The notes under the pieces are model-generated. The model saw only the letters and a list, made by a program, of their open reading frames with translations. It was not told the DNA's origin and ran no database searches. From assembly GCA_964304625.1 (NCBI GenBank), contig OZ199838.1, positions 16,537,469 through 16,601,468 on the forward strand: a stretch of 64,000 bases of DNA, read 5' to 3'. Within the stretch, counting starts at the first letter, position 1; the number at the start of each line of letters is the position of its first letter. This document shows, piece by piece, positions 8,091 through 42,494 of the stretch. The position numbers and the translations under genes are program-made. This stretch comes from Kudoa neothunni. Its lineage: Eukaryota; Animalia; Cnidaria.

Positions 8091-10185
8091 TTCGAAACTC
8101 GCAGCTACATTGAGCCATGGGGATTCATTTATCCCTCCCCAATTGCACTTCCCCATTTTACAATAATTATTATAGGACTATTTCCTACGCCAAATATAAA
8201 TTATATAAGATTAAATATATTTATTTTATATCATAATTTTTATCTTCAGCGAGATGAATCACAACATAATTCATATTTAACCGGATTTTGAGAGAAAACA
8301 AAAATTATTAAACATTTGAACTGTAGAAATTTACAAAAGCTAATGAATAAGATAATTTGTTTTGGTGTATTTTAAAAAACTTACGTGTGTTCCCATGGGG
8401 GGTCGGTCAGCGACCCCAGTGGTTTTTTACTATAATGATTGAGTATGATTATAACTGTTAATATATAGATGAATTAATCTTTTGACCGTTAAAATATATG
8501 TTTAAAATATCCACGCGACAGAAGAATTGTTAAAAATAACGTAGTCATGTCGAGAGACATTACCAATTAAACTTATCCAAACAAAATTTAAAATGGTGGA
8601 GTATAATAGATATAACTATTTGGGGGTTCGTTTCTAACTGAAGGTGACATAAAAGAAACTTCTACGTCAATTTTAATATCAATATTAGGCTGCTCGTTCA
8701 TGTCACTATCAAGAGATAACTCCGGTGAAGTTTGGTAATTCAACATTGAAATTACACTAAGGTATGTTTACAACACCTCTTGTGAAATAAAGAATAATGT
8801 TGAGTCTAAATAAAGTAAGGATGAATTTATTTGAATTATGAGTGAAAATAGTTTAAATCGTTTCAATAGTTTATATGGAGATGGCCTGGCTTAATTTTAC
8901 TAAAAATTAAACAAATAAATCGATTAACATAAATGTTTATTTGTTAGTTTTATGGAATAGGGAATCGTTGAAATTTGGCGATATCATGACACAGAAATAA
9001 AGTGACTAAGTATAATATTATTAATTATTAGACTAAACTATTAATTTTAATAAATATACGGCCATCTTTTAGTTTATGGAAAAAATAAATATTTAAAAAC
9101 ACATCTGGAAACCTGTTCGGTTTTCAACCCCGCAAAAACCTTGACTACAATAATGATAGTGGGTTTAATCTCTTTTAATCCTATTCCATCTTCGGAATCT
9201 TTATAACAGATAACAAAAATGGATTACAAATTACAATATTCCTCAGTTTTGTCGTAACAATATGTATTCAAATGATCAATGTTCATTTTACTTATCATAT
9301 AAACTAAATACACTTAATACAACCGTATAAAATAATATTTAAGTAACATATATTAGTGGTACGTAACATTAAACAAAAATTGGAACCGATAGAATTCTAT
9401 AATTTATCTGAATTTTTTTATTTCTAAACAATACACTTTAAGCTAAGATTACATGAACCCAAAAATTAAAGTTAAAAGTTTAATTAGGTAAAACAAACAT
9501 TTACCAGAAATGAGGTCACGGATGACCCCGCATGGTCCGGGAAGGGTTAAATAAAAAACTGGTGGAAATGAAAAAGAAGAATTTTCATTTATTTTATTAT
9601 GCCTATCTATAATTTTATCAAATTTGAAATTTTTAAGACTTAATTTCCTTTAGTTTCACAGTTAGCTTATTTTCTACGGTCAGGTGAACTCGTTGGTGAC
9701 TAACATTTTGCCCGATCCTTGCAATCTCACTTTTATAAAAGGAAATTACAAATATAAGAATTTAAATAATTCTCATTTATTATACTAACTAAGATTGAAT
9801 CTTATATGAATATTTTATCGAGAACCAACATAGATATTGTTTACGAATAATATTTCGCAAATATCAGTCAAACTTATTACTTATTCATTTAGGTGATATA
9901 AAGTGATCCTAAAATAAAAATTATAATTCATATTTATCACTAATAAAATTTTACCATTTTTGAAAGCATAGAAAATGAATTTTTCATCTGGTTACATCAT
10001 TATTTTAAAACACCATTTACTACTGATATTTAATTACATATGTATAGTTTTCGAAATTAATAAAAATTGATTAATTATTGTTTAGTGGATCATTAAATGA
10101 AAAAAATATTAATGAGAACTTTTATGAAAGAAAGTAAATTTTTTATAAATTACATACTATCATGATATTATGGATATTCATATAA

Positions 10186-13100
10186 AATTGTATTTATTGA
10201 TGTATCAAATCCTATTATTAAATTCACATGAATATCAATAGTTAAATCGAAATATGCAGTATAATCTGATTTACACTCTTAATCACAAAATGAAATCTCA
10301 ATTAGTCTCGATTAGTTTGCTAATTGCGTTTTCATGTAATTTATTTAAATTATTTATTTTATTAATTTCTTGAAGATATTAATATAAATACCGCCACTGA
10401 AGAGAAAACAGCAGTCCAAACTTCTACAAAAATACTTTCGTACGACATTGTAGACGACAAAATTCAATTGGTTTTGACTGGGTCAGATTATGTAATAGGT
10501 ACGAAACAATGCCTCATAAAAAAGGAGAAGGTTGATGGAAGTGGATTTGATCAGATGAGTACTTGTGTAAGCAGCACTGACTCAAGCAAATGTGTACGTG
10601 TCTGTGCGGGGGATGGAAACAAAATAGCGTTTAATGTGCTTTCACCCAGAACAAAATATATCTTTGTCTTTTCCGGGACGGAAGCCGATGCAGTAAAAGA
10701 TAAAGATAATGGCGGAGAGGTTTTTGGACTTGCTATTCGTAATTTAAATAAAATTATTTATTTTCATTAATTAAAAATAGCGCTCTTGGTGAATCCATCA
10801 ATAACAGTGTCCATAGATACTAATACGAAAAAATTAACGCTTGCAGCCAAGACATGTAAAAAAAGTTGCCTGTCCTATTGTTTATAAAGGTATTCAATAC
10901 GCGGCCGGTACAATGGGAGACAATTGTGATTCTGATAACAGCGATAACAAAGTTGATTTTGACCTTATGATTCCTTACTATGAGATGATATGCACGAATT
11001 ACCCGAGTTTCTTCTATCAAATGCCAAATCCGTACATGAAAGAAAATATTGACATATACAAACCCCAATACTACGTTACTTACAAGAAAGGTGACACTGA
11101 AAAGAAAAAATATATTCTAAACTTCACCAACTCATTCCCTTCCGAAATTTGTTTATTCAGTATTAAAGACGCTTCAAGTGTTGCTACAGAGCCTCCGAAC
11201 TCTTACGTATCAGTGTGCGGAGGAGGAACTGATAAAAAGTGTTTTGCACCTTGTGATACTGTTGAATTAACACTAACTGAGTCTAAACCAATAGTCGAAA
11301 TATTAGTTCAGACCAGATATCATAATTTAGAAACAAGCAGTGGAGCCACTGAAGGTTATGAAGAGAGGAAATATGGTACGATTTTTGTTAAGAGAATGTA
11401 ACTATTCATTTATTATAGCTATCGAAGAGGCTGGCGATACGAATACTCTTTTTAGTTCGCAAACAACTGCAGGGATTACACTTAACCTTTCTGCATACAA
11501 TTCAGCTTCTGCTAGCGCAAAATTTGGTACGTGCACATTAAAGCATTTTCCAGCAGACAAATTCAGGAAAACCAATGGAGAAACAACAAATTGCCAACCC
11601 AGTCAAGCTTGCACTCAGACTTGTGCAACACCTTCTGTTATACAGGGACTATCTGCAGGGAAAGCATACATAATTGAGATCACTCCCGACAACCATAACT
11701 GACCACACAGATTTTAAAGAATACCTGTTTTTCAGAACACGTAAGGGAAATATTCATGTCGTTTATTTAATTATTCTTAGAAAAATCAGATGGATCAAAC
11801 TTCGTCGACACAGCACCCACACCAACTGACGTGACTGCTGCAATTAAAGCGGTTGATGGTGACGTTGGATCAGCAGCAAACTGAACCGACCTGTTCCTAT
11901 TACGTCAGTATAAAAGATAAAAACACGTTCGTAGAAGCAGAATGTGAAGACAGCAATCCATGTAGAGGATTTTGTAAAGACACCAAGAAGTTGATAAATC
12001 TAAACCCTAAAACAAACTACGATATTAAAGTCGTTTCACACGAAGACTATGGAATCAAAATATTTGAAAATATTTCAACTAGTAAAATAATTTAAATTTA
12101 AGCTAATATAAATTATATTCTTTAGCTTGGTCAACCATGACCCCTATCCCAAAGATTCCTAGATAAAGGGTTTAAAGTGGCTGGAACTTTGACATCCGTT
12201 TATCCACAAGCAACATGTCACTATAAAATAAGAGAAAAAGACGGAGAGACTCTACAAGATGTTTATTCCTGTCCAGCAGTTGTCCCCTCCGCTGCCGCCG
12301 ACCAGTCCCAGTCACTGAAGATATTGCTGCTCCTCCTTCACCTACTCAAACTCAGGAAACGACAGAATCAAGGCCGGCCAGCGTTTCAAATTTGTCTGGA
12401 ATAAAGATAGCAAGAGCAGTTAATGCAGAAGAAGAGAATTCGACATCCACTGAACCCGCCATTACTCAATCTATGTTTCCACCATGTAGCAAACCACCAC
12501 TCTGCAGCAATATAATAATTAGTGATGGTTATGAGGCTAATAAAGAATACCAAGTATTGGCGACGGCTGTAGGTCGTTCAGAGGAAGTTACAATCGATAT
12601 TCCTAAAAGTACTATAACAAAATTAATATAGATATTTTCTAAATTGTCATATAAATATAGATTCACTCCCAGAACTATCTCAAGATACGAACAAACAAAT
12701 TACCGTTGTTATTGAGAGAGTAGGAGATACGTTAAAAATCACGTCATTGCTTCCAAAAGAAAAGGATGATAATTCAGTATGTCGATGGATACTGAGAGAC
12801 ATCACTGATGTTTCTCAACGAATAGTGAAAAAAATGTGATTCCAGTAGAAGTAAAGTTTGCAAACTTCCAACTTGCAAATCATTTACCATCAAAGAGGTA
12901 AGTGATACCAATGATTATCATTTAACACTTATTCACTCCCGAGATTCCAATGTTAAAGGAATTGGAATAATAAAACGAGGTAACTAACAATTAATAATAA
13001 TTTTTGATTATTATAATTAATAATTTAGGAGAGGACCTCTAATCAATCCAGGTAAAATTAATGTTATAATGTTTAATGTAATGTATTTCTAGGGCGAGCA

Positions 13101-13916
13101 CCTCAATGTATTAAATTTTGAGTTGATATGTTGGAATAAGTTTTCATTTAGGATTGTTGGAATCATTGTTCCAGTCGCTATTGTTATTGTAGGGGTTGGA
13201 TTTTACTTTGGTTATATGAAGAATAAAGGATAACTTTGATTAACTCAGTTAAACATTTGGAACATTTACATTATTTCTTATTAGTTTATAATTTTATAAT
13301 TGAACATATTATAAATATTTGTAAATTTATTTACTAGTAATTATCCATTTTATTTGTAATATTGCTAAATCAAGATGAAATTTCTACGGAAGATTTAACT
13401 TTAATTAATAACTCAAATATCTATTTTTTAGCTAATTGGACAGAATATTATCAATCCTCCGTTGTTTTTACCTAGTTTTGAAGAGATCTGCATTGTATGA
13501 TTAGTTAAACCTATCCAGAAAAAATATTTTATTGTATACGTCTATCTTTATTAGAAAATAACATTTTAACTGTATCTCCTCCACGATTTGTATGATAGTC
13601 ATATACAAAATAACCGATTGATTGATAAATGTCTTCATAATCAATATCTTTTACATTTATATTCAGATTGGTTCCCCGTTTACGTCTTGGAATTTTTTAA
13701 AACATTTATAATCTAAATTAAATGTTCTTAGTATAACCCAACCGAGTATCTACCGCGGAAAATGAGGTTCATTTTGACTACAATTTACTTTGAAGGTTTC
13801 AAACTGCACAAATTCACTGAAATAATAATTAAATATCTTAAAACATATTATTAAGAGATTAATACATAATAGTTAAAATGTAAAAGTCTGATCCCTGTTG
13901 ACAAGAAAATTTTTGA
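10186..13916 (+). repeat. Segmental duplication unit 1 (partner ~21030-24766)
   Basis: Shared from attgtatttattgatgtat (~100 bp upstream of the ATG) to aaaagtctgatccctgt..acaag about 680 bp past the stop; the 3' flanks are nearly identical. Confidence 0.9.
10290..13233 (+). CDS. Cys-rich FN3-like repeat type I membrane protein, copy A (10 exons, about eight +1 frameshifts relative to copy B)
   Basis: Signal peptide MKSQLVSISLLIAFS and TM/tail IVGIIVPVAIVIVGVGFYFGYMKNKG*. Collinear with 21133-24083 and has the same splice sites. Frame is broken by single extra bases near 10864, 11690, 11880, 12142, 12285, 12307, 12834 and 13034. Confidence 0.8.
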
Positions 13917-16767
13917 AAAATATGCGTCATTATTTCGTCTCGGGTCCATATAAACTTAATTTTACTTACTGAATTAATTATCTTTAAAAGGAAAATGTTG
14001 AGAATAATATATTGTAATTTTGGTTCATTTTGCAATATAAGGAGTCAATCAGTCTCAAAAATACCCTTATAATGGATTGTCATATTGATTTTTTTCTGGT
14101 TCTGTTGAGTTAAACTTTAATATTTACTAATAAGGGAACATTTAAAAAAATTAGCACTTTATTATCTTCATAATCATAAATCCTTGGATTCGTTCAAATA
14201 TAAATAAAGTAAGGGTCACTGTTTTTGCTTAAATTCGATTTTAGTCGTCGTACTTTTGAAAAATTCATAATCCTTTGAAAAAGTTGAAATAATTAGTAAC
14301 CGGATATAAATTGATAGTTTTTTGTTGAATGGATCGACTTATAAAGAATGAATTATGAATTATACTGTAAATATTTCGAAGAAAAATTTTCTCAAAAAAT
14401 ACAATTTCCGAGGAAATGTAGTCAGAGAAACATAATTAATTAAAAAAGACGTCAAGACACTTCAACAGCTACGTTTTTAACCTTCCGAGTGTCCTTGAGG
14501 TCCAATGAACCCCAATGAATGTTTGAATCAATTTTAGAGGACCTGATTTTACAACAGTGACTTAAATATCATATCTATTCTCTTACTAATATAAGTTCTG
14601 TTAAAATATTACAGAAAATTTGAATTTTTACGTTCAGGTCACGAGGTAATCAAAATACTTACCACATTACATCTTTTGGGCTCCAATGGATTCCACGTTT
14701 TTTTTACCAAACAAAAAAAGAAAAATATGTTAAAACAATTTTGAGAATTGAATAAAATTTTATCGAGAAGAAGCAGAGATAATTTGAAAAAACGACGTGT
14801 ACCTAAAATACCTATCATTACCGACGAGCGAAATGCTGCCATACATGGTTCTTAGTGTAATATTTTGATGAAATTGAATCCGATATCAATGGTTTTTATG
14901 ATAACTTTTGATAATTTGACTATTAACGTCATTCCATTGTTTCTGAAGATAATAAATGCTGTCGAAATATATACGTAGATAAGGATGACGTTAATTGGTT
15001 TTCTGAGGAATTTCAAATAAATAAAAGCTCTAAAAAATATTTTTCAAAACCTTAAGGTTCCCGTTCCTACGTTTCAAACAGAATCAACTCCACAACTGAT
15101 ACACTCCTCATATTTTATGGCAAGTCTTTTTCTCAACTGTTATTTCATATACTAACAAGTTTGACAATTATAACTATTAGCATTGTTTGAAGACTTGGCA
15201 AACCAACAGTCATTGGCTTATATTGGAATCCCTGTCTATATGTTAATTTTCAGATCTAAATTATAATCATTCAAATTTCTTTGTCGCGAGTGATGCTGTT
15301 ATTGTTCAAGATCTCGAGACAGAAAAACGAGGAATTTTTTATGTTTGTAGAATCAATTGTAATAAAATCTATTCAAATGTTTTTTTCGTGGTATATTGTA
15401 ACATTAAAAACTAAAATAATATAAATATCTCGCATTTTATCTATTTGAAACAATATGTATTTCGGGTTTTATTGGGCGTGACTATTAAGAAATTAATTAT
15501 AGAGGGAACAATTTTTAAGTCTTCGTTAATGTGGAATGATATATATGTTCATTAAAACCCATTAAACTAAAAAATAATCCCCAGCCAAGTTTTACCGGAG
15601 GCAAAGATTGATAATCGCGCTCACACTAGAATTTCTTGTTATTTAGTCTTTTTGTAGGTTAAAAATGTTGCTATTTAATAAATTCATGTATTGTTCAATT
15701 ATATTATAGATTTTCTTACTTTTAATGTATAATTGATGTATTCAGATAGATCAGTTGACACGTAAACATATCTTTGCTTTTCTCAATGATGTGTTGTCAT
15801 TTGTTGTTTTGTGTGCTCATTATAAAATATGATAGTGTCTATTTGCACCAAGATGTCCAAACCTTGGATTTTCCCCCCAGATCTTGAGATTTTTCTTCTA
15901 AACTTGGCTTCTTTGGAGGTCTTTTCGCTTTAGGCCAACTCTTGGGTTTTTTTGATTATTTACAAAACTTTTAAATTATTGAATTCTTTGAGGTGAGTTT
16001 ATAAATAATAAATTTAAGAATTAGATAGAATAATCATAATTATTGTTTTAGTGATGGAGAGAATTAATATTATTCCAAATTCTAAAAAGATATCACGATC
16101 GTCGTCAACACGCTGTTTTCCGATTCTTGAATAATTATTATTTGAACAACTTTAATTATTATTCAGTGGTTGTATTTGGATATTTCAACGCTGTCTTAAA
16201 ATTTTCTAGTTTTTTTAATTACATATTTTGAAGTTACCGACGTATATTATTTTAAAATATGCGTGAAATTTCGAACGGAGATCAACAAAGAGGATGGGAT
16301 AATGTGTTCCAATCAAAATTGGTTAAAAGTAGACTTTAAATATTGGCTTGATTAATATGCTAAGTAGAGAAATTTCAGCTACTACAAATGTAGAACTAAT
16401 TTATTCATTAATGAACACAGTAAAAACAAAACAAACTAATTCATTAAAGGTTAAAACTGTAAAATGTAAACTCATCGCAAAGCAGTTGATCAGAAGAAAT
16501 AATAATACATGTTTAACGTCGCATCCAATAAATAAACTAATACATGATGTGAACAGCGGTGTTGTGAGACAACAATACCTTGAGAGCTCGTAAAATAAAT
16601 CAACCTTCCTAACTGAGGGTTGTGAGGATGTTGAAGACAATTCAATTGACGATAAAATTAGAAAACGCATTTAAAATAAAAATTTCTATTATTTTAATAA
16701 TATTATTGTATTTTCTTTGCAACGTTGGGTTTTTTCCGATAGTCTCATTGGACGCCCTGATTGGCAA

Positions 16768-18140
16768 CAGGGTTGCCAGAAGATTAGCGAAAAAATACCA
16801 AAAATTTTTGAAAAATGGACCAAAATAAAATAAAACTTACCAACAGCTAATCTGCAAGAAACAGAGATTAAGGAGGAAAAGCGTAGTTATTTAAAATGTT
16901 TTTAATCTATCTAAAATGAAATTGTTTCATTACAGTTATCTTCATAAAGGTTTGTCTCTATGAACGCTGTTACTAAATTTTCAGGCGGGTTCTATTTTGT
17001 ACAATCTGTATTATAAAATAAATCAAGCTATTTAACGTTTCGGTCTTCAATAATGATCTATTTTTCATTTTGTTTATGTTCAATTGGGAAAATATTCTTT
17101 CGGCAAAAGCAGAAGAATAAGGTAATGTGAGAAAACTCATCATTAGTTTTGAAATTAATGGATATTTAGGAACATCGCCAATTCTTTTTTCTGATAAATC
17201 GTATCAAAATTTTTCGGGGTCACTTATCGAAAAGAGATTTGAGTCTTCGAGAGTTAATTATCTCCATTCAATATCCACATTGGTGCAGTCTTCATCCGAT
17301 ATAAGATTGGGGAATCTTGCTCCAAGGGGTATGATACACTCATGCTTACCTTCATTTACGTTACTCAGATCAGTTGCCTCAAACAATTCAAGTTCTTTAA
17401 ATGAATTATTGTACAGAAATCGATAAAGTATTTAATTTATTATGTATGAATTCATTGTATATATGCAAGTCACTTTGGATCCACGTCAAATACTATCTAA
17501 TGGAAGATAATTTGAGTGGTTATTAATATTCCAGCTACCCATACTTTTTATGATTTCTCTCTTCATAAATAAGCTGAGAATGACTTTTACTGTAAAACTA
17601 ATTGAATTTTGTAGCTTGTGCAATCGAAAGGTTTCTGATTGGGATTCAAGATTAAGTTTGTTCATTACTAGGAGTATAAAGTTTAAGAATTCAAAATAAA
17701 TATGATTGACTGGTTTATTAAGTTTATGATTTATTAATTTCTCTGATTTAAAACCATTTCTTGATACTGCAGTAGCGAAAAACATTTTAAGTGCATTCCA
17801 TTGATCGGGTATTCTAGCGACGACTTGTTCGAGTGACAACCATCTCGTGCTACAAGAGAGTAATATCTTTCTAGGACAAATATCCATCATCTTTTGAAAT
17901 TCCTTGTATTCACTAAAACGTTTTGATCTATTCAAAACGTATGTGTAAATACTTATGGCTAAATTTTCCAACTCGTTGGGAAGTTGATGACAAACTTTAG
18001 AAGCACATACAAAATTTACTGAGTGACAAACGCAATCTTGCACGTAAAGCGAAGGAATAATTTGTTTCAGTAAACTCTGGACACCACTTTTGTTACCCAT
18101 CATAACATTTGCATTGTCACTGGAAAATCCGATAAGATTA
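16768..18140 (-). mobile_element. hAT transposon 3' part, degenerate transposase
   Basis: Minus strand reads GFSSDNANVMMG...CVCHSVN (CxxH motif), TRWLS, and the dimerisation motif LTLPYSSAFAERIFSQLN near 17080-17140. TIR-like cagggttgccaga at 16768. Confidence 0.88.
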
Positions 18141-18181
18141 TGAATGGAGATATTATTAATTTTAAAAAATTTTTATTAATA

Positions 18182-19970
18182 CAAAAATTCTCGTTATTGC
18201 GGGGTTTTTTGTGGTCAATTTGTTTAAATCAGATAGTGTTTTTTCATTGTGTCCTGTGATAAACGCAATATTTCAGAGAAAATGGAAATCATCCATTACT
18301 ATAATTCAATAAAAACGTTGAAGGGTTCTAAATCAATGACAATATCCAAGTTTAAATTGAGTGGTATAATAGTCTTCTATTTAATATTAATGTAAAATCA
18401 CATTTAAGGTCATTCAACACTTCAGAGAATTCTTTCGCACGAAGATAAATTCAAAAATATAGACGATGAAATGTATGATTGGTTTGTTAAACAACGGTGG
18501 AATGGTAACGTTCCGTCGGGAGATGCCATTATCAAAAAGGCTTCTTATATCGCAAATGAGAACAAAGTTTCCAATTTTAAGGCCACCAGGGGATGGCTTT
18601 CAGGGTTCAAGTCAAGATATTGGATAGTTTTCAAAAAGTTCCATGGCGAAGCTGCGAGTGTAGATAATGTATCTGTCGACTCGTGGATTATTGAAAACAT
18701 TGATTTGATTGGAGCATATAATCCAAAAGACGTTTTAACATCGACGAAACTGTTCTTTATTATGAGCAGTTACACAACATTGGTTATGTTTTAAAGGATG
18801 AAGTTCGAATATAAGGGAAAACATATCCAAAAAGGGTGACTGTTTTGCTGTCCTCAGCTTTAAGTGGGGATAAGTTCCCATTAGATGTTAGCGGGAAATT
18901 TCAAAATCCTAGATGTTTTAAAAGAGTCAAACACCTCCCATGTGAATATTATGCACAAAAAAGTGCATGCACGGATGACGTCTAGTATATTTATAGAAAT
19001 AATGAAAAAGTTTAACTGAAGGATGATAAATCAGAATAGAAAAGTCTTAATTTTATTGGATCAATGTCCAGGCCACCCAAAAAACATTGATTGATTTGAA
19101 AATATCAAATTTTTTTTCTTACCCAAAACTACAACTAATATTTAACAACCTCTTGATTCAGGTATCATTTGCTGCCTTAAAAGCAGGTACAAAAGTTCAA
19201 TGACCGAGCGAATGGTTTTATGCGAAGATTCTGTCATAGAAAAATATACATTGCTTGATTCAATGAAAACATTACCTAAATGTTGGGAGATTATTCAGCC
19301 GAAAATTATTTTTAATTGCATTAAAAAATCAATAATATTTAGAGGTATTAAATAAAATTACGATAATAATGTTATTATCAGTTTATAGACCAAGAAGATA
19401 TGAGAGAGATACCTCAAATCAGCAACTGTTCTCAAAGTGATATTTAACGTATACCAAATTAATTTTTTCTAGATGAAATCGAAGATTCAGAAAATATGTT
19501 TGATGACGATTATGAAGCAACATGTGAGGAAGAAAATAATGAGGACTTATTGTCCATAAGTGACGAATCTGATGATAGCGAGTCAATCATTGAAGACATC
19601 AAAATTTCAATTAATCAAATGAAAAATGCAGTGAACGTTCTGAGGGAAGCTTTTATTAAAGAAGATTCGACGGGATCGTTTGATTTACATCCCACAATGG
19701 ACCGAGTTTTAAAAATATCAAGAGAAAGATTCCGACAAAAATTACAAGATTTTTCGACAAAATTTGATAAATCACATTTCATTTCATTTAATTAAATAAT
19801 ATATTTATACATAAAAAATTGATTTTCACTAATTGGCATCGGACGTAAACACAAAAAAATCGTATTTTATAGTACAACGCGCACGCAAAGGACTGGATAT
19901 TGCGTAAAAACTTTTTGTTGCGTGGGTTTTTGTTGGTCTCAGAAACCCACGCAATATCCAATCTCGACTG
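18182..19970 (+). mobile_element. pogo/Tigger (CENP-B-like, DDE_1) transposon, degenerate, transposase with introns
   Basis: Motifs FKLSHSTLQRIL (after a 48-nt intron), FKATRGWLSGFKSR, HGEAASVD, NIDET, LLDQCPGHP and QPLDSGII, then an acidic tail. Right end ...atctcgactg-TA. Contains stops and frameshifts. Confidence 0.9.
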
Positions 19971-20142
19971 TATTTTCAACTGTCTAAAATTCTTCAGACA
20001 TATCATAAATCTCTTCTATTTCATACAATAAATTTTATTTTCTATTACTATTGGCTTTGATATGTGTTTTTAATTTCGCACACAATCAATTTCTTCTTTT
20101 GATGGAACTTTATCCTTATGTATCTACCTATCATCTATCTAT

Positions 20143-21018
20143 CAGGCACGTGGCGTCAGAGTAAGCAGCGCCTGCCTCAGAGTACAAAACAACAACAAAA
20201 ATTTTCGTATACAAATAGTTTTAATTTAATATTGTTATATTAATTTATCTTCTTATTTTGCATAAAAATTGAAAACTTAGATAATCTTTTGATAGCATAA
20301 GCACGGATTAGCGCTGCCCTCAGGCCACCCTTGTGACTCTACAGGCGCATCACAACCTAGCACGTATCGCATGTGCCAGTCAACACACGGGGTTCTGTTC
20401 TATTGACCCCTGGGATCATAATCTTCGCTGTCCCTCGAATACCTTCGATTCCATGTTCGAAATTAAAATGTGTTTACACTCTGATTGACAACTTTTATTC
20501 GTTTTTTTTCAGTTTCAAGTTAATAAATTTTTTATAAATTATTTATAGGAATACCAGATATTACACTTTACGGAATAAACCATTTTTAATGATTCAACTC
20601 TAACCGTTAATCCCTGGTTTGTTTACTTTAAAAATAACCGTAGGAATCATGAACAACAGTGAATATTTTAAAGCATTTTCAAAACTTTCGTACAAAGGAA
20701 AAATTAAAATTATTACTGATGGTAGACCTCCTCTAGAGCTTCCATAATTACAACAAAAGATAGATTGGATTACCAGAACATTCCAAACTATCTGGTACAA
20801 CAAAAAAGAATGGATATGTGGTTGTATCACAACAAATAGACTTTTTTTGGTTTTCATGCATGCTTTTCTCAGCATCCCTCGAAAGTGTCTGGGTGAATGA
20901 AGAGTATTATGACTTAAAAAACTTTTGACAGCTTCAAAACTCATGACGATCTAATATCTAATACTGGGGTAAAATCATTGAGTGCTTACTCAAAGCAACT
21001 ATCTACGCCATGTGCCTA
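20143..21018. mobile_element. Non-autonomous hAT-like element abutting the copy B promoter
   Basis: Terminal inverted repeats caggcacgtggcgt / acgccatgtgccta plus inverted gagtaagca / tgcttactc. Confidence 0.6.
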
Positions 21019-21029
21019 ATATATATAAC

Positions 21030-24000
21030 ATTGTATTTATTGATGTATTAAATCCTATTGTTATGCTCATATGAATACCAAGAGTTAAATCGAAATGTGC
21101 AGTATAATCTGATTTGCTCTCTGTACCACAAAATGAAAACTCAGTTAGTCACAGTTAGTTTATTAATTGCATTTTCATGTAGTTTATTTACATTATTTAT
21201 TTTATTAATTTCTTGTAGATATTAATATAAATACCGCTGCTGAAAATAATCCAGCAGCCCAAACTCCTACAAAAATACTGTCATATGACATTGTAGACGG
21301 CAAAATTCAATTGGTTTTGACTGGGTCAGATTATGTAACGGATTCAAAAAAATGTCTCATAAGAAGGGAGAAGAATGATGGAAGTGGATTTGATCACATA
21401 AGTACTTGTGAGGCGAGAGATAGCACTGGTGGGAATGACAGATGTGTACGGGATTGTGCGGGAAATGACAACACAATAGCTTTTGATGTGCTTTCACCTA
21501 GAACAAAATTTATTTATGTTTTTTCTGGAGCGGATGCTGGAACAATAAAAGATAGTAATACTGGTGGGGATGTTTTCGGACTTGCTATTCGTAATTGAAA
21601 TAAAATTGTTCTCTTTTAATTGGAAGTAGCGCTCTTGGTGAATCCAAAAATTGCGATATCCATAGACAGTGAAACAAAAAAATTACAGCTAGCAACTAAA
21701 ACATGTAAAACAGTTGCCTGTCCTATTGCTTATAAAGGTATTCAATACGCGGCCGGTACAATGGGAGACAATTGTGATTCTGATAACAGCAATAACAAAG
21801 TTGATTTTGACCTTATGATTCCTTACTATGAGATGATATGCACGAATTACCCGAGTTTCTTCTATCAAATGCCAAATCCGTACATGAAAGAAAATATTGA
21901 CATATACAAACCCCAATACTACGTTACTTACAAGAAAGGTGACACTGAAAAGAAAAAATATATTCTAAACTTCACCAACTCATTCCCTTCCGAAATTTGT
22001 TTATTCAGTATTAAAGACGCTTCGAGTGCTGCTACAGGATCTACAAAGAATTATGCATCAGTGTGCGGAGGAGGAACTGACAAAAAGTGTTTTGCACCTT
22101 GTGATAACGTTGAATTGACACTTGCTGTGTCCAAACCAATCGTTCAAATATTAATTCAGACTAGACATCATAATTTAGAAACAAGCAGTGGAGCCACTGA
22201 AGGATATGAAGACAAAAAATATGGTACGATTTTTGTTAAGAGAATGTAACTATTCATTTATTATAGCTATCGAAGAGCCTGCCGCTGCGAATACACTTTT
22301 TAGTGTGGAAACAACTGTAGGGATTACACTTAACCTATCTGCATATGATCTAGCTTCGATCGTACCAAAATTTGGTACGTGTTCATTAAAACATTTTCCT
22401 GCTGACAAAATCAGGAAAACCAATGGAGAAACAACAAAATGTACTGGCAGCACCGCGTGTGATACAGGATGTTCAACACCTTCGGTTATACAAGGGCTGG
22501 ACGCAGGAAGAGCTTACATCATTGAGATCACTCCAGGAAGCATAGAAAATCACACAGGCTTTAAAGAATACCTGTTTTTCAGAACAAGTAAGAGAAACAT
22601 TCATTGCACCTATTGAAATTTTCTTAGAAAAATTGGATACATCAAACTTCGCCACCACAGCACCCACACCAACTGACGTGACTGCTGAAATTAAAGCAGT
22701 TGATGGTGAAGTGGTAAAAACAGACGCAACAACTGAACCGACCTGTTCCTATTACGTCAGTATAAAAGATAAAAACACATTTGTAGAGGCAGAATGTGAA
22801 GACAGCAACCCATGTAGAGGATTCTGTAAAGACACTAAGAAATTGATGAATCTAAACCCCAAAACATACTATGATATTAAAGTTGTTTCACATAAAAACT
22901 ATGGAATCAAAATATTTAAAAATATTCAAACTAGTAAAAATAATTTTAATTTAAGCTAATATAAATTATATTTGTTAGCTTGGTCAACCATGACTCTTTC
23001 CCATAGATTCCTAGATAAAGGGTTTAAAGTGGCTGGAACTTTGACATCCGTTTATCCACAAGCAATATGTCACTATAAAATAAGAGAAAAAGACGGAGAG
23101 ACTCTACAAGATGTTTATTCCTGTCCAGAAGTTGTTCCTCCGTCGCCGCCGGTCGGTCCAGTCACTGAAGATATTGCTGCTCCTCCTTCACCTACTCAAA
23201 CTCAGGAAACGAACCAACCTACGCCGGTTAACAGTTCAAATTTGTCTAGAATAAAGATAGCAAGAGCAAGTAATGCAGAAGAAGAGAATTCGACATCCAC
23301 TGAACCCGCCATTACTCAATCTAAGTTTCCACCATGTAGCAAACCACCACTCTGCAGCAATATAATAATTAGTGATGGTTATGAGGCTAATAAAGAATAC
23401 CAAGTATTGGTGACGGCTGTAGGTCGTTCAGAGGAAGTTACAATCGATATTCCTAAAAGTACTATAACAAAATTAATATAGAAATTTTCTAAATTGTCAT
23501 ATAAATATAGATTCACTCCCAGAACCATCTCAGGATACAAACAAACAAATTACGGTAGTTATCGAGAGAGTAGGAGATACGTTAAAAATCACGTCATTGC
23601 TTCCAAAAGAAAAGGATGATAATTCAGTATGTCGATGGATACTGAGAGACATCACTGATGTTTCTCAACGAATAGTGAAAAAATGTGAATCGAGTAGAAG
23701 TAAAGTTTGCAGACTTCCAACTTGCAGATCATTCACTATTGAGGATGTAAGTGATACCAATGATTATCATTTAACACTTATTCACTCCCGAGATCCCAAT
23801 GTTAAAGGAATTGGAATAATAAAACGAGGTAACTAACAATTAATAGTAATATTAATTATTATTATAATCAATAATTTAGGAGAAACTTCGAATCAATCCA
23901 GGTAAAACTAATAAAATAATGTTTAATGTAATATATTTCTAGGGCGAGCACCTCAATGTATTAAATTTTGAGTTGATATGTTGGAATAAGTTTTCATTTA

Positions 24001-24766
24001 GGATTGTTGGAATCATTGTTCCAGTCGCTATTGTTATCGTAGGGGTTGGATTTTACTTTGGTTATATGAAGAATAAAGGATAACTTTGATTAACTCAGTT
24101 AAACATTTGGAACATTTACATTATTTCTTATTAGTTTATAATTTTATAGTTGAATATATTATAAATATTTGTAAATTTATTTACCAATAATTATCCATTT
24201 TATTTGTAATATTGCTAAATCAAGATGAAATTTCTACGGAAGATTTTAATTTTGAATTAATAATTCAAATATATATTTTTTAGCTAATTGGACAAAGTAT
24301 TATCAATCCTCCGTTGTTTTTACCTAGTTTTGAAGCGATCTGCATTGTATGCTTAGTTAAACCTATCCAGAAAAAATAGTTTATTGTATACGTCTATCTT
24401 TATTAGAAAATAACATTTTAACTGTATCTCCTCCATGATTTGTATGATAATCACATATAAATTAACCAATTAATTCATATATTTCTTCAGAATCAATATC
24501 TTTACATTTATATTCATATTGGTTCCCATTTACTTCTTTGAATATTTTAAAGCATTTATAATCTAAATTAAATGTTCTTAGTATAACCCAACCGAGTATC
24601 TACCGCGGAAAATGAGGTTCATTTTGACTACAATTTACTTTGAAGGTTTCAAACTGCACAAATTCACTGAAATAATAATTAAATATCTTAAAACATATTA
24701 TTAAGAGATTAATACATAATAGTTAAAATTTAAAAGTCTGATCCCTGTCGACAAGCAAATTTTTGA
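21030..24766 (+). repeat. Segmental duplication unit 2 (partner ~10186-13916)
   Basis: Direct by-eye alignment to unit 1. Confidence 0.9.
21133..24083 (+). CDS. Cys-rich FN3-like repeat type I membrane protein, copy B (10 exons, intact, ~850 aa)
   Basis: Nine GT-AG introns of about 39-52 nt join the ORF-track pieces 21311-23836 into one open frame. It has a signal peptide, modules ending in LSPRTKFIYV / LDAGRAYIIEI / LNPKTYYDIKV / YEANKEYQVLV / VSDTNDYHLTL, 22-nt and 15-nt micro-exons, a TM helix and the tail MKNKG*. Confidence 0.88.
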
Positions 24767-25281: not shown

Positions 25282-26977
25282 TATTTGTAACTTAATCCTA
25301 AAATCTGCCGTTGTATTTATATATTAAATATGATTTATGATGAAAAATAGATTCATTGTGGTAAATGTTCTAATATATTTTGATGTTACATTGCTAATAA
25401 AAGTTTTTTTGGGTTAATATAATTTTACATTTTATTATGTATTGGAAATAGAATATTAATGGGATATATCGCACATATTTTTAATTGTTCTAATCAAAAA
25501 AATGAATATAATCTAATATTTTTAATAAAATCTCTGAAGGCGGTCGACGAAAATAAGTTTGGATAGTTCTTCTCTAGAAGGAATTCATTTGTCAAAAATG
25601 GTGGCTATAAAGATGTACAAAAATAATTTATTATACGAATAAACATAAAAATTTAATGGTACATATGAAATTTATTTCCTGCATATAATAAGTGTTATAT
25701 TTTATGATCTCTAACTCGAATGACAATTCATCATACATTCCATTTCTTTTAGAAATACAAAATAATATGAGGAATAAAAATATGTAAAATTTTTTATATT
25801 AAAAATGATAGATTATGTTTTTATTTATCCAAGTTCTCAAAAATATGTGATAATTACGCTAGATTATTTGTGGACTCAGCATGGTTGCACTACCGAAAAT
25901 TTATTCTTCTTCAAACTTCCCAAAATATACGAAAATTAAGTTAAGTAAATAATAGATAATATGTAAAACGTTAATAAAATATATGCAGTAGTTTTAGAGA
26001 AATTCATTCCCCGAGATGTAGCCACTATCTTTCTTCAATATTTTTTGGGATTTAAGGTGCTCCGCCGAGCGCACGCGCAACATGGAACCAACCTAAGTAA
26101 ACGTTGAAAACAACTACCTCTAAGTATGAATGATTTGGGAAATATTAGCATTAATAACAGTACACTCATGGCTGTAATCCAAAAAACAATTTTTAAAAAA
26201 TAAAAAAGATATCCATACTTTAACTTGTAGAGGGATAAAAATCATTTTTTCTTTTAATAATTTTATATTTATCAAATAAAATATTTTAATATTGAACAGC
26301 TTTTTAATTTATGTTAAAACATAAAAAAATATGTGTTCCCTCTAATCCCCATTTTACAAATAATATTTTAAATATAAAGATTTATCAAAAAATTAAATAT
26401 TACGATAAATCCACTTTTATTTGGATGATTATGCAATTACGTTATATAAGAAATATAATCATTACTTAATCAATAGGTCTCAAATTAAATTACTCTATCC
26501 TCATCTAGGTCAATGTTTCTCAACTTTTTTAATAGAATTCCATGCCCATCTTTGTCAAAAGTATTGATTTTTAACTTAAATTATTTATAACTTTGAATAA
26601 AGTTTTCCGTCACATTAAAATTTCAAAGCGAAATATATATTTATATTTCTTTTTTCATTAAAATCAAAATGTAATCGATCAGATCTAATTTAATTTATCG
26701 ATGGGCCTTAAACATTAACGTCCATAGTTCCTCAATCCATCAAAACCAGCATCAAATGGAATTCGAGGTAATCCAACTCACATTAGGCAAGACTTTGATG
26801 TAATTGGGTGTATAAAACGGAAATAAATGATTTAAATAGAAAATTAATCAACACTTCATTAGGCCCAATCAGAAACAGGGAAGATAGCGATTATAAATGG
26901 GACAAGATTGGGATTAAAACCATCCCGATTCTGATTCTATTCAGGTAAAGACCACATTAAACTTTTTTGTTTATTTA

Positions 26978-39775: not shown

Positions 39776-40029
39776 AATATGATGTATGATATGATGTATG
39801 ATATGATGTATGATATGATGTATGATATGATGTATGATATGATGTATGATATGATGTATGATATGATGTATGATATGATGTATGATGTATGATATGATGT
39901 ATGATATGATGTATGATGTATGATATGATGTATGATATGATGTATGATATGATGTATGATATGATGTATGATATGATATATGATATATGATGTGATATAT
40001 GATGTGATATATGATGTATGATGTGATAT
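39776..40029. repeat. Minisatellite (ATATGATGTATG)n with 7-mer insertions and decaying right end
   Basis: About 20 units visible directly; explains the spurious HHII / YHTS ORFs. Confidence 0.97.
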
Positions 40030-42494
40030 AAAGAAGGAAATGAAACAATCAAAAAACCTGTAATAGAATTATAGCATGCTTAATTTACAGGGATAACATT
40101 CCCACATAATGTCATTGGTAAATTTAAATAGATCTCTGGTTTTAAGGGAATTTATGAATTTTCTGTTAAATATTAACGATCAAAGAATGGTTGGATGTCT
40201 TCAACTATCTTCATGATATTTTAAAAACTGTTGATCAAAAATTCGCATATTATTAGATCGATGTCTTTCACATCTTTAATTTAATAATAAAAAAAAGATG
40301 AATCATTTTTTTGTTAAAAAATAAACAAATTATTCTATGGGCGCAAGCACGAACCATCGATACATCGATATTGGGCAGTAAAAGCTCAAGTCGCTATTTA
40401 GTACGTAAAATCGATATCATGCTGTAATTTTATTATGTCGATCGGTAGATAATGCATTTTTAAAATGTGGATGAAATTCTGGTGAATATGTAAAAAATAT
40501 AACATACTTAACAACAAAATTTCTAGATAAAATAATATAAATACGAGCGCGCAAATCCAATATTATTCAACCGGGGTTTCGCAAAGCTCGCCTAGGGGAT
40601 CCTCGGCAGGAATACATATGAAAATTTTGTATAGGCATCAAAGTTTAAATAAATATTCCCGCTATCTTTGGCGATGTCGAATATGAACAATTTTAATTAA
40701 TTATTATTCTCATAACAAATATCTAAATATAGAATAATATGAATAATAGAGATTTTAAACTTGTTAATTTATTAAAACCCCACTGAATGCTGGCAGCGAT
40801 GCTCCAAGAATCTGAGTACGTTTTTGAATGCATGAGCCTGAGTTTCATCAAATTTTGTTATCGTTTCGTGTTTTTTCTTTTAAAAATTTTCTGGATAGCA
40901 AGCATTTTGCGATATGAGGGGTTGTGTTGTTCTGTCGCAATTGAAACAACAGAAGGTGAACGACCCATACTTGCTTTCACTTTTTAACAATATCCAAGAA
41001 TTTATCGCTTTTGATTAAACGCTTTAACACGGAGACAGAAAAATCAAAATATTGTAGCTGTAGCTGTAAGACGAAGTCACCAACCACGAATATCATATTA
41101 GTTATTATTGATTTTGGATAGAAAATAAACGTTGAAAATATTTCTGTTATTTTGTTGGTGAGTGCGCAGTTAAATTAAAAAACTTGTATTTTCTTCACAT
41201 GAGTTTAATTTTACATGTGAGGATGCGCAATTCCAAAAAGGTTGAAAACCGCTGCGTTAGCGTTACGCTGCGTCAATGGTTAATATTAATCAAACCAATA
41301 CGTAATACCATCTCATTTTCTATTGGATATTAATTCCATGGTGATATGGTTAAGTGTGAAATTGTGAAGGTGTTTAATCACGGTCACATTGATTCATTAA
41401 TTAAGTTTTACTCTACACACAACACATTCGAAGTATAAATGACAGGTTCTTGGTGGTGTTGGGGTTTTCATTCATATGCTTTGTATTACCTCAAGTCAGG
41501 GTGTTTCCATGGTAAATAACACCTTCAATTAGATTAAATAATAACGAATGGCCCAAGTTGATAATTTGATAATTCAAATAATTGATTCAATTCAAAAACT
41601 ATTATCAACACAGAGTGGGATAAAGGTTGAGTTGTTAAACCAATTTGTAGGTAGAATAGCTGAGCCGCCAGTATTTAAAATAATGGTCCTCGGATCATCC
41701 ATCATCACTTTAGTTTGATATCAAATTAACTCCCTGTTGACAACTCCATCAGATAGATTATTGATGGAGTTGTGTAGAGAGATAATCTTAATATTTTAAG
41801 TAGAAAGATTATTCGGAATTTTCAGCTCAATTCACACATATCCAATGTGAAGTGGTTATTCGATTAAACCTATCCTTAGGACAAGCTGTATTGACTGTGT
41901 CAATGGATATCGCCCAAGTTATCAATCATTAATCGGATTAATTTTAACGAATCCCCTGACAATAGTTCGACTGTGATTAAACCTGTCGGCTTCGTGACGG
42001 CTGGTAGTGTTTTTTTGTTTTGTCATAAATTGTTATCACGGAATTTGTGGGCAGCCAATTTAGAAACAATAACAACTCGCACTAATAAATAAGCTCATGA
42101 AAGCGGCTTTCTACGCAATTTCACACGCTACCAACCTGCTCCCAACCACAGCATCTATCCCACCATCTCATGAGACCTAACAACAACTGTTTTCACTCAC
42201 GAAGTTCACTGGTTGAACGTTTCGAAAACTGTGTTTCTAGCCGCGCCCCATCACTATAGCTTAATTACCAAAATTGTACTTAATGCATCTTTTGTGGTTT
42301 TAATTGGGTAACAATAATCACATTAAACATCAATAGAAATTGTTAACGAACTCGTACCACTCCCTATGAATGTATTCACAAGTATAATAGGTTGTAAATA
42401 GCATTAAGGATTGGTACATCAAACCAAAGGAGTAAGCCGCGTCACACCCGACCTCCTCGTCCCAGTCCACTTTCTGCGTAAACATATCCAATAG

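Follow-up and report, generated by a model that had tools for sequence, protein, structure and literature searches.

An 11-gene array of putative FN3-like membrane proteins with variable loops and a near-invariant anchor in the genome of Kudoa neothunni

Little is known of how myxozoans present themselves to the fish and annelids that they parasitize, and these parasites cause major losses in fisheries and aquaculture. Among the described proteins closest to the ones considered here are the fibronectin type III (FN3) array proteins of metazoans (fibronectin, tenascin, LAR/PTP-delta, sDscam, NCAM and the contactins), in which the topology is that of type I, each domain has its own exon, the introns are in phase 1 and the BC, C'E and FG loops vary, and the Alr proteins of Hydractinia, which are encoded in clusters within a cnidarian genome and are single-pass proteins of Ig/FN3-like domains. 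From the myxozoan Sphaerospora molnari, VSP-like, RIFIN/STEVOR-like and ETRAMP-like genes have been reported, but not the family considered here (papers including preprint 10.64898/2026.02.11.705288). The genome of Kudoa neothunni, a parasite of tuna muscle (40.2 Mb in three chromosomes, from approximately 7x HiFi coverage and purged of duplicates), was published with no mention of gene families, surface proteins or fibronectin (PMC12239612). Here we describe two related genes, copies A and B, that lie in tandem in a 64,000 nt window of this genome (contig C1, 16537469-16601468; AT-rich, approximately 30% GC), and for which an original prediction, made from the sequence of the window, had proposed a role as variant surface antigens.

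The Kudoa proteins resemble the metazoan FN3-array proteins in topology, in the correspondence of exons with domains and the phase of the introns, in the position of the variable loops and in the seven-strand sandwich predicted for one of their modules (module 4). They differ from them in a tail of just five residues, in having hundreds of paralogues and in a domain, encoded by exon 3, for which no relative is recognizable; ordinary FN3 domains also lack the four invariant Cys residues (two presumed disulfides) of the Kudoa modules. The Hydractinia Alr proteins are built of Ig domains of a V-set-like type and carry long tails for signalling, whereas the Kudoa proteins have the five-residue tail and no Ig match in Pfam, and whereas the Alr proteins are polymorphic, the Kudoa family is known from one assembly.

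In the reading that we favour, and which we consider probable, copies A and B are members of an 11-gene array that belongs to a very large family (at least 180 loci) of type I membrane proteins, and the variation among its members stems from loosely constrained loops together with gene conversion. The array was mapped from the window and 97 kb of sequence upstream of it; its genes are arranged head to tail between 16.443 and 16.561 Mb of contig C1, spaced 7-14 kb apart, with A and B as the final two. Under a gene model transferred from copy B, eight of the 11 genes are intact, encoding 840-848 amino acids in a nine-exon form of the model that omits a 15-nt micro-exon described below, and the other three, copy A among them, are frameshifted. 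The pair described originally is a small part of a larger system, and the genome-wide count of members that had been proposed as a check bears this out. In a search covering 40.26 Mb in four contigs, the best 150 of 471 candidates for B exon 3 (198 amino acids) all had E-values below 4e-58, the best 150 of 306 candidates were scored for B exon 7, and the motif I-P-x-[YF]-E-x-x-C-x-x-x-P, written as a degenerate DNA pattern, gave 180 matches, with none in a reversed control. The family thus comprises at least 180 loci by motif and exon searches, with a range from 180 to about 470, and the possibility that there were only two copies, which would have told against a surface-antigen family, is removed. 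With genes of about 3 kb, 180-470 members would amount to approximately 1.5-3.5% of a 40-Mb genome. Fifteen divergent members, drawn from all three chromosomes, retain the order of exons and modules, and all 14 of those in which exon 7 was located end in a transmembrane (TM) helix and a basic tail of 3-6 amino acids; the tails among members include KNKG, KNRG, KKNKS and KKKN.

Copy B (21133-24083, + strand) is an intact gene of 10 exons separated by nine GT-AG introns of 39-52 nt, those before the first micro-exon all being in phase 1, and it encodes a protein of 851 amino acids. The spliced coding sequence was used for translation and for dN/dS (omega) calculations, and single exons were the queries in searches and structure predictions. 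The exons are as follows.

21133..21178, + strand: B exon 1, carrying the start codon and the signal peptide; an ATG followed by a hydrophobic stretch, then a 40-nt GT-AG intron
21219..21590, + strand: B exon 2, encoding module 1 (Cys 61, 79, 91 and 95); from the open frame and the eight-copy alignment
21630..22223, + strand: B exon 3, encoding modules 2 and 3 and their eight Cys; the exon that defines the family and is conserved best
22267..22587, + strand: B exon 4, encoding the FN3-like module 4; varies more than any other exon
22628..22933, + strand: B exon 5, module 5, four invariant Cys
22979..23458, + strand: B exon 6, module 6, with a Pro/Thr/Ser-rich insert of about 70 amino acids between Cys2 and Cys3
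23511..23828, + strand: B exon 7, encoding the membrane-proximal module 7, which hardly varies within the array
23880..23901, + strand: B exon 8, 22-nt micro-exon; GT-AG borders and phase kept in 11 of 11 copies
23943..23957, + strand: B exon 9, predicted 15-nt micro-exon within the originally proposed last intron; counterpart in A at 13093-13107
24002..24083, + strand: B exon 10, TM helix, five-residue basic tail and stop codon

The encoded protein begins with a signal peptide, followed by seven modules (about 100 amino acids and four Cys each, 28 Cys in total) and a TM helix with its Kyte-Doolittle maximum at residues 822-844, and ends in the tail KNKG. The spacing C..C-x5-11-C-x3-4-C recurs in all seven modules, and the protein contains seven N-x-S/T sequons. 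It had been described as an unrecognized single-pass protein of about 850 residues in two copies, and both translations agree with this and contain every peptide string that was quoted. The replacement of loops with retention of every Cys is also real, in that all 28 Cys residues of B are matched in A, and 27 of them occur in every one of the eight intact array copies. Two of the variable loops originally singled out lie in exon 2 (module 1). All 11 array copies share the TAG acceptor of intron 2, which precedes exon 3. The Pro/Thr/Ser-rich insert of module 6 spans approximately 23125-23334, as judged from sequence and composition, and is probably O-glycosylated; module 7 shows 93-99% amino-acid identity across the array and a nonsynonymous divergence (pN) of 0.016.

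The 100-nt segment originally read as the last intron resolves into a 41-nt intron, the 15-nt micro-exon and a 44-nt intron, which places this micro-exon directly after the 22-nt one and just before the TM exon. Every one of the 11 array copies retains the unit of AG, 15 nt and GT, as do 12 of the 14 divergent members that were inspected, and the length and borders of the unit are kept in members with just 30-50% protein identity. A stwintron was considered for this segment and ruled out, as removal of the first 41 nt yields no new donor site; the predicted micro-exon fits better and gives introns of normal size (41 and 44 nt).

The exon map of copy A was transferred from B by alignment, and all of its splice sites are GT..AG.

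10290..13233, + strand: copy A gene
10290-10335, 10376-10738, 10781-11375, 11419-11740, 11781-12081, 12126-12608, 12661-12979, 13029-13051, 13093-13107 and 13152-13233, + strand: copy A exons

Its reading frame is broken by eight 1-nt insertions, near 10858, 11687, 11878, 12146, 12284, 12307, 12828 and 13033, which lie in exons 3-8 and several of which fall within runs of A or C. Compared with the intact copies, A has no deletions, and in the register of B it has no in-frame stops. Since the pattern is one of insertions only and the assembly is of approximately 7x coverage, copy A looks more like a product of read-level error than of decay, although it is possible that it is a very young pseudogene, given that eight other copies are clean. 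This +1 insertion signature of low-coverage consensus errors could affect gene calls elsewhere in the genome.

No exon of B matches a Pfam family above threshold, and neither an Ig nor a VSP match was found in these searches; the best score for fn3 (PF00041) was that of exon 5 (15.3 bits against a cut-off of 25 bits, E=0.023), the other exons giving nothing. AlphaFold2, run on module 4 (exon 4) with 23 paralogues, returned a model of seven strands (pLDDT 80.8, pTM 0.73). When this model was used in an exhaustive structural search with VIA-align, the top 50 matches were all FN3 domains (Z 6.9-8.0, 75-90 residues aligned), including those of sDscam, LAR/PTP-delta, NCAM2 and contactins; a Z near 8 is not far above the background stated for the tool, and the uniform FN3 identity of the matches is the real argument. 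Foldseek returned FN3 monobodies and 1fna (fibronectin 10Fn3) with a probability of 1.0, TM-scores of about 0.6 and E-values of 5e-3 to 5e-2. Module 4 is accordingly modelled as an FN3 domain with A-B-E and C-C'-F-G sheets. Its variable positions lie in the BC loop, in the C'/C'E stretch that carries Cys3 and Cys4, and in the FG loop, while strands B, F and G are almost invariant, and the variable loops occupy the same pole that is used by engineered FN3 binders (monobodies).

Matches to the exon 3 domain beyond K. neothunni are few. A profile of this exon found only 17 matches among 1.84 billion representative proteins and two among 5.8 billion clusters; all are short, ten were looked up and proved to be singletons without a name, and the two cluster matches are unnamed too. 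Five of these outside homologues were traced to eukaryote-like contigs in SRR33849685, SRR31175926 and ERZ28624939; the three contigs that were measured are AT-rich (21-29% GC), and one of them has the same module order. An orphan open reading frame (ORF) next to an outside homologue had no match in the K. neothunni genome. The family appears to be restricted to myxozoan-like genomes, and the exon 3 domain, as far as profile searches can tell, has no recognizable relative. A feature search of the ESM Atlas with exon 3 gave a best score of 0.89 to discoidin-like clusters with few shared features and was treated as noise. We note that a Logan contig of SRR33849685 (67-1068) carries modules 1-3 in one open frame, with no equivalent of the intron between exons 2 and 3, and that its later module borders have intron-like gaps.

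The two genes lie within a 3.7-kb direct repeat (89.7% identity) whose copies are 10.85 kb apart.

10180..13916, + strand: duplicated segment, copy A; the gene with about 110 nt upstream and 683 nt downstream, from self-BLAST and a repeat finder
21023..24766, + strand: duplicated segment, copy B, from self-BLAST and a repeat finder
13917..21022, no strand: A-B spacer, single-copy in the window, with transposon debris inside

In a blastn search against the reconstructed array, the A-B spacer matched the one that separates copies m07 and m08, some 48 kb upstream, at 93-98% identity. A-B would therefore have arisen as a duplicate of this two-gene block (m07-m08), which further conversion then patched, and not through a one-gene tandem duplication. 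Over at least 433 nt, the 5' flank of B (20700-21132) matches that of m08 at 99.8% identity. Within the array, the 683-nt 3' flank is common only to A, B and m07, the flanks shared with the other copies extending just about 134 nt downstream and 112 nt upstream.

As had been stated originally, several parts of A and B are identical or nearly so, the TM/tail exon at 81 of 82 nt, intron 3 at 43 of 43, the segment read as the last intron at 95 of 100, and the 3' flank at 648 of 681 aligned nt. Exons 2 and 4 are 19% and 22% diverged, and introns 2 and 4 (22% and 25%) are on a par with the exons beside them, so that a coding divergence in excess of that of the neighbouring non-coding DNA, from which diversifying selection had been argued, is not seen there. 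Overall, A and B have a dN/dS of 0.39, and their alignment is a mosaic in which blocks of approximately 100% identity alternate with blocks that are about 20% diverged. Among the array copies intron 3 shows a mean difference of 16%, and its identity in A and B is therefore specific to this pair and gives no sign of constraint; the identical stretches are best read as pair-specific gene-conversion tracts. Significant runs of shared polymorphic sites were found in 40 of 55 copy pairs (permutation test, Bonferroni-corrected), and along the gene the nearest neighbour of B changes between m08, A, m02, m01 and m07. From the 5' to the 3' half, 4-fold p-distance falls from 0.27-0.33 (exons 2-4) to 0.08 (exons 6-7) and intron divergence from 0.11-0.22 to 0.065-0.09, and synonymous (NG86 pS), 4-fold and intron divergence drop together about three- to fourfold between exons 2-4 and exons 6-10. 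This joint fall argues that the conserved 3' half is homogenized DNA and not solely a conserved protein.

Diversifying selection on the Cys-bounded loops, as the force behind the differences between A and B, was examined on the four loops named in the original prediction (46 codons) in the eight intact copies. These loops have a pN of 0.35, which exceeds intron divergence (0.11-0.22) and, slightly, the regional 4-fold divergence of 0.28, and they differ in length as well. However, the introns make a poor neutral yardstick, as they are tiny, rich in AT (70-89%) and probably under constraint, and the ratio of pN to regional 4-fold divergence of 1.24 (0.96-1.57; 0.41 for the framework of exons 2-4) has an interval that includes 1, in loops that had been picked for being variable. 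Their pN/pS (NG86) is 0.68 (bootstrap 95% 0.51-0.90), against 0.35 in the framework of exons 2-4, and their maximum-likelihood (ML) omega (GY94) is 0.64-0.70, below 1 at P=0.012, against 0.36 in the framework. We conclude that the named loops seem to evolve at a roughly neutral rate, as unconstrained surface loops do, with positive selection not demonstrable in them. The only part of the gene with an omega above 1 across the eight intact copies is the module 6 insert (23125-23232; pN/pS 1.94 (0.96-5.5), ML omega 2.8-2.95, P=0.007 in a likelihood-ratio test), and this speaks for such selection, but it lies outside the named loops and was chosen post hoc after a sliding scan, with a test that assumes a single tree in the presence of pervasive recombination, which may inflate it, and its omega is suggestive only. 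Diversifying selection as the driver of the A/B differences is thus an explanation to which we give little credence.

Programmed antigenic variation, in which one or a few members would be expressed at once and conversion among copies and pseudogenes would yield variants that escape fish antibody, would suit the large repertoire, the conserved anchor with variable exposed loops, the pervasive mosaic conversion and the tandem arrays, many of which lie towards chromosome ends; variation of antigens in the course of development has also been reported for some myxozoans, by a mechanism not known (preprint 10.64898/2026.02.11.705288). We nevertheless think it unlikely, since the loop omega is below 1, nearly all copies of exon 3 are intact, leaving no pseudogene reservoir, and mosaic conversion is common to any tandem array. 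The muscle stages of Kudoa, moreover, lie inside myofibres, largely hidden from antibody. That the several hundred FN3-like genes form a true variant surface coat, with conversion shuffling the distal loops and the mucin-like insert, is similarly doubtful, although if true it would be the first antigenic-variation system made from metazoan adhesion domains. A role inside the parasite, either in contacts among its own cells (cell-in-cell and spore-forming cells) or in Alr-like kin recognition between plasmodia, has in its favour that chains of FN3 domains are classic metazoan adhesion modules, that such proteins are among the top structural matches, and that the exons match domains with phase-1 introns in an organism that is a cnidarian. 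A five-residue tail, however, cannot signal alone, several hundred copies far exceed the needs of known adhesion systems, and there is no Ig or FN3 match in Pfam at threshold, and we consider this role rather improbable. An assembly artefact, in which two alleles or haplotypes of a single gene would have been placed in tandem as A and B, might be suspected in a genome of about 7x HiFi coverage from an infected fish, with duplicates purged and with error-like 1-nt insertions in copy A, but this we regard as very improbable. The homology ends at 10180/21023 and at 13916/24766 with different flanks on each side, the pair stands within an 11-copy array with spacers that bear transposable elements, and the conversion tracts (50-430 nt) are far below the length of HiFi reads. 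Three sequencing runs from one sample, probably the same as that used for the assembly, contain B, and their contigs span introns and flanks without splice joints and so derive from DNA. These short-read contigs match the variable parts of B with 0 mismatches and carry its own flanks, and a loose end at 24764 continues into A's own downstream flank, so that both junctions are represented; word depth is about 6-14 in the variable parts of B against 50-117 in the shared 3' parts. The read data support real paralogues over mis-joined alleles, the latter having been named at the outset as a finding that would undo the surface-antigen proposal.

In the reading that we favour, that of an arrayed family with loose loops and conversion, the seven modules would be beta-sandwiches whose strands and Cys residues are under purifying selection (omega ~0.3), and the BC, C'E and FG loops of the membrane-distal modules would be nearly unconstrained (omega ~0.65-0.7). 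Ectopic gene conversion and segmental duplication would homogenize the 3' half, including introns and the untranslated region, and leave a patchwork in the 5' half, so that variable loops on a constant stem would arise because loop constraint is relaxed and copies convert one another ectopically. The proteins may lie on the parasite plasma membrane as an adhesive or recognition coat, with the distal modules as a binding or antigenic repertoire. Of the variable-antigen proposal, what stands is the large modular family stapled by Cys, with variable membrane-distal loops and a near-invariant anchor; the argument from diversifying selection does not. Several points weigh against our reading. A confident fold was obtained for just one module, module 4; the AlphaFold2 model of exon 3, with 16 paralogues, has a pLDDT of 55 with only the first 90 residues usable, and these give generic Ig/FN3-like sandwich matches (Z<=7.4), and profile comparison of module 4 with exon 3 (hhalign probability 0.2%) gave no significant homology. 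Conversion and selection are hard to tell apart in the 3' half, and with a nominal omega above 1 in the module 6 insert, some positive selection may be at work. The data come from a single assembly at approximately 7x HiFi and from short reads of the same sample, an RNA run labelled with the host species yielded 0 reads, and the published RNA-seq contains too few Kudoa reads (PMC12239612).

The spacer and the remainder of the window contain several other repeated or mobile sequences.

18471-18794, + strand: Tc5/pogo-type transposase helix-turn-helix fragment in the spacer (Pfam E=5e-12)
17486-18103, - strand: ORF of 205 amino acids in the spacer, with no Pfam match, which may be a remnant of a hAT-type transposase
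25574-26031: about 450 nt downstream of B that recur in several upstream-array spacers (72-79% identity, both orientations), probably an interspersed repeat
24990-25256/37998-38264 (90%), 54203-54582/54868-55248 (91%) and 7831-8089/57993-58251 (76%): inverted-repeat pairs with no relation to the gene family, which may be transposon ends
39777-40043: short tandem duplication with units of about 110 nt (85-92% identity)

The elements that are new in this analysis are the 11-gene array, the duplication of a two-gene block, the tested omegas, the map of the FN3 loops and the 15-nt micro-exon. The family is an obvious candidate for the host-facing surface of the parasite and for diagnostic or vaccine targets, for which module 7 would be the natural first choice.

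Among parasite surface proteins, the SRS proteins of Toxoplasma and the 6-Cys (s48/45) proteins of Plasmodium are likewise lineage-restricted, disulfide-fixed beta-sandwich modules in tandem arrays, and they serve at the surface in attachment and immune interplay. They are, however, apicomplexan, mostly anchored by glycosylphosphatidylinositol and of one to few domains, whereas the Kudoa proteins have seven modules and a TM anchor and are encoded by spliced metazoan genes; no sequence or profile similarity to them was found in this analysis. With the VSPs of Giardia and the VSP-like genes of S. molnari the Kudoa family shares, by analogy only, a large repertoire in a parasite, a signal peptide, an ectodomain that bears Cys and varies, a single TM helix and a conserved basic tail that is very short. 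The Giardia VSPs are more than 10% Cys with many CXXC motifs (preprint 10.64898/2026.02.11.705288), whereas the B protein has 28 Cys in 851 residues (3.3%) and no CXXC arrays, and the VSP tails are CRGKA (Giardia) or [KR]X[KR]XK[KR] (S. molnari), against the KNKG-like tail of Kudoa, which is short and basic but of another motif. Of the features expected of a variant surface antigen, the family has the large repertoire, in which exposed parts vary and the anchor is conserved, and the conversion mosaics (40 of 55 pairs), and an omega above 1 on exposed loops was not found for the named loops. Short tracts with changing partners, homogenized ends and variable internal blocks are common to the var, VSG and SICAvar mosaics and to ordinary arrays alike, and concerted evolution alone would explain the Kudoa data, without the expression-site, switching or silencing machinery of var, VSG or SICAvar. 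The family may thus exemplify how concerted evolution can give a constant stem and variable tips that are readily mistaken for the work of diversifying selection.

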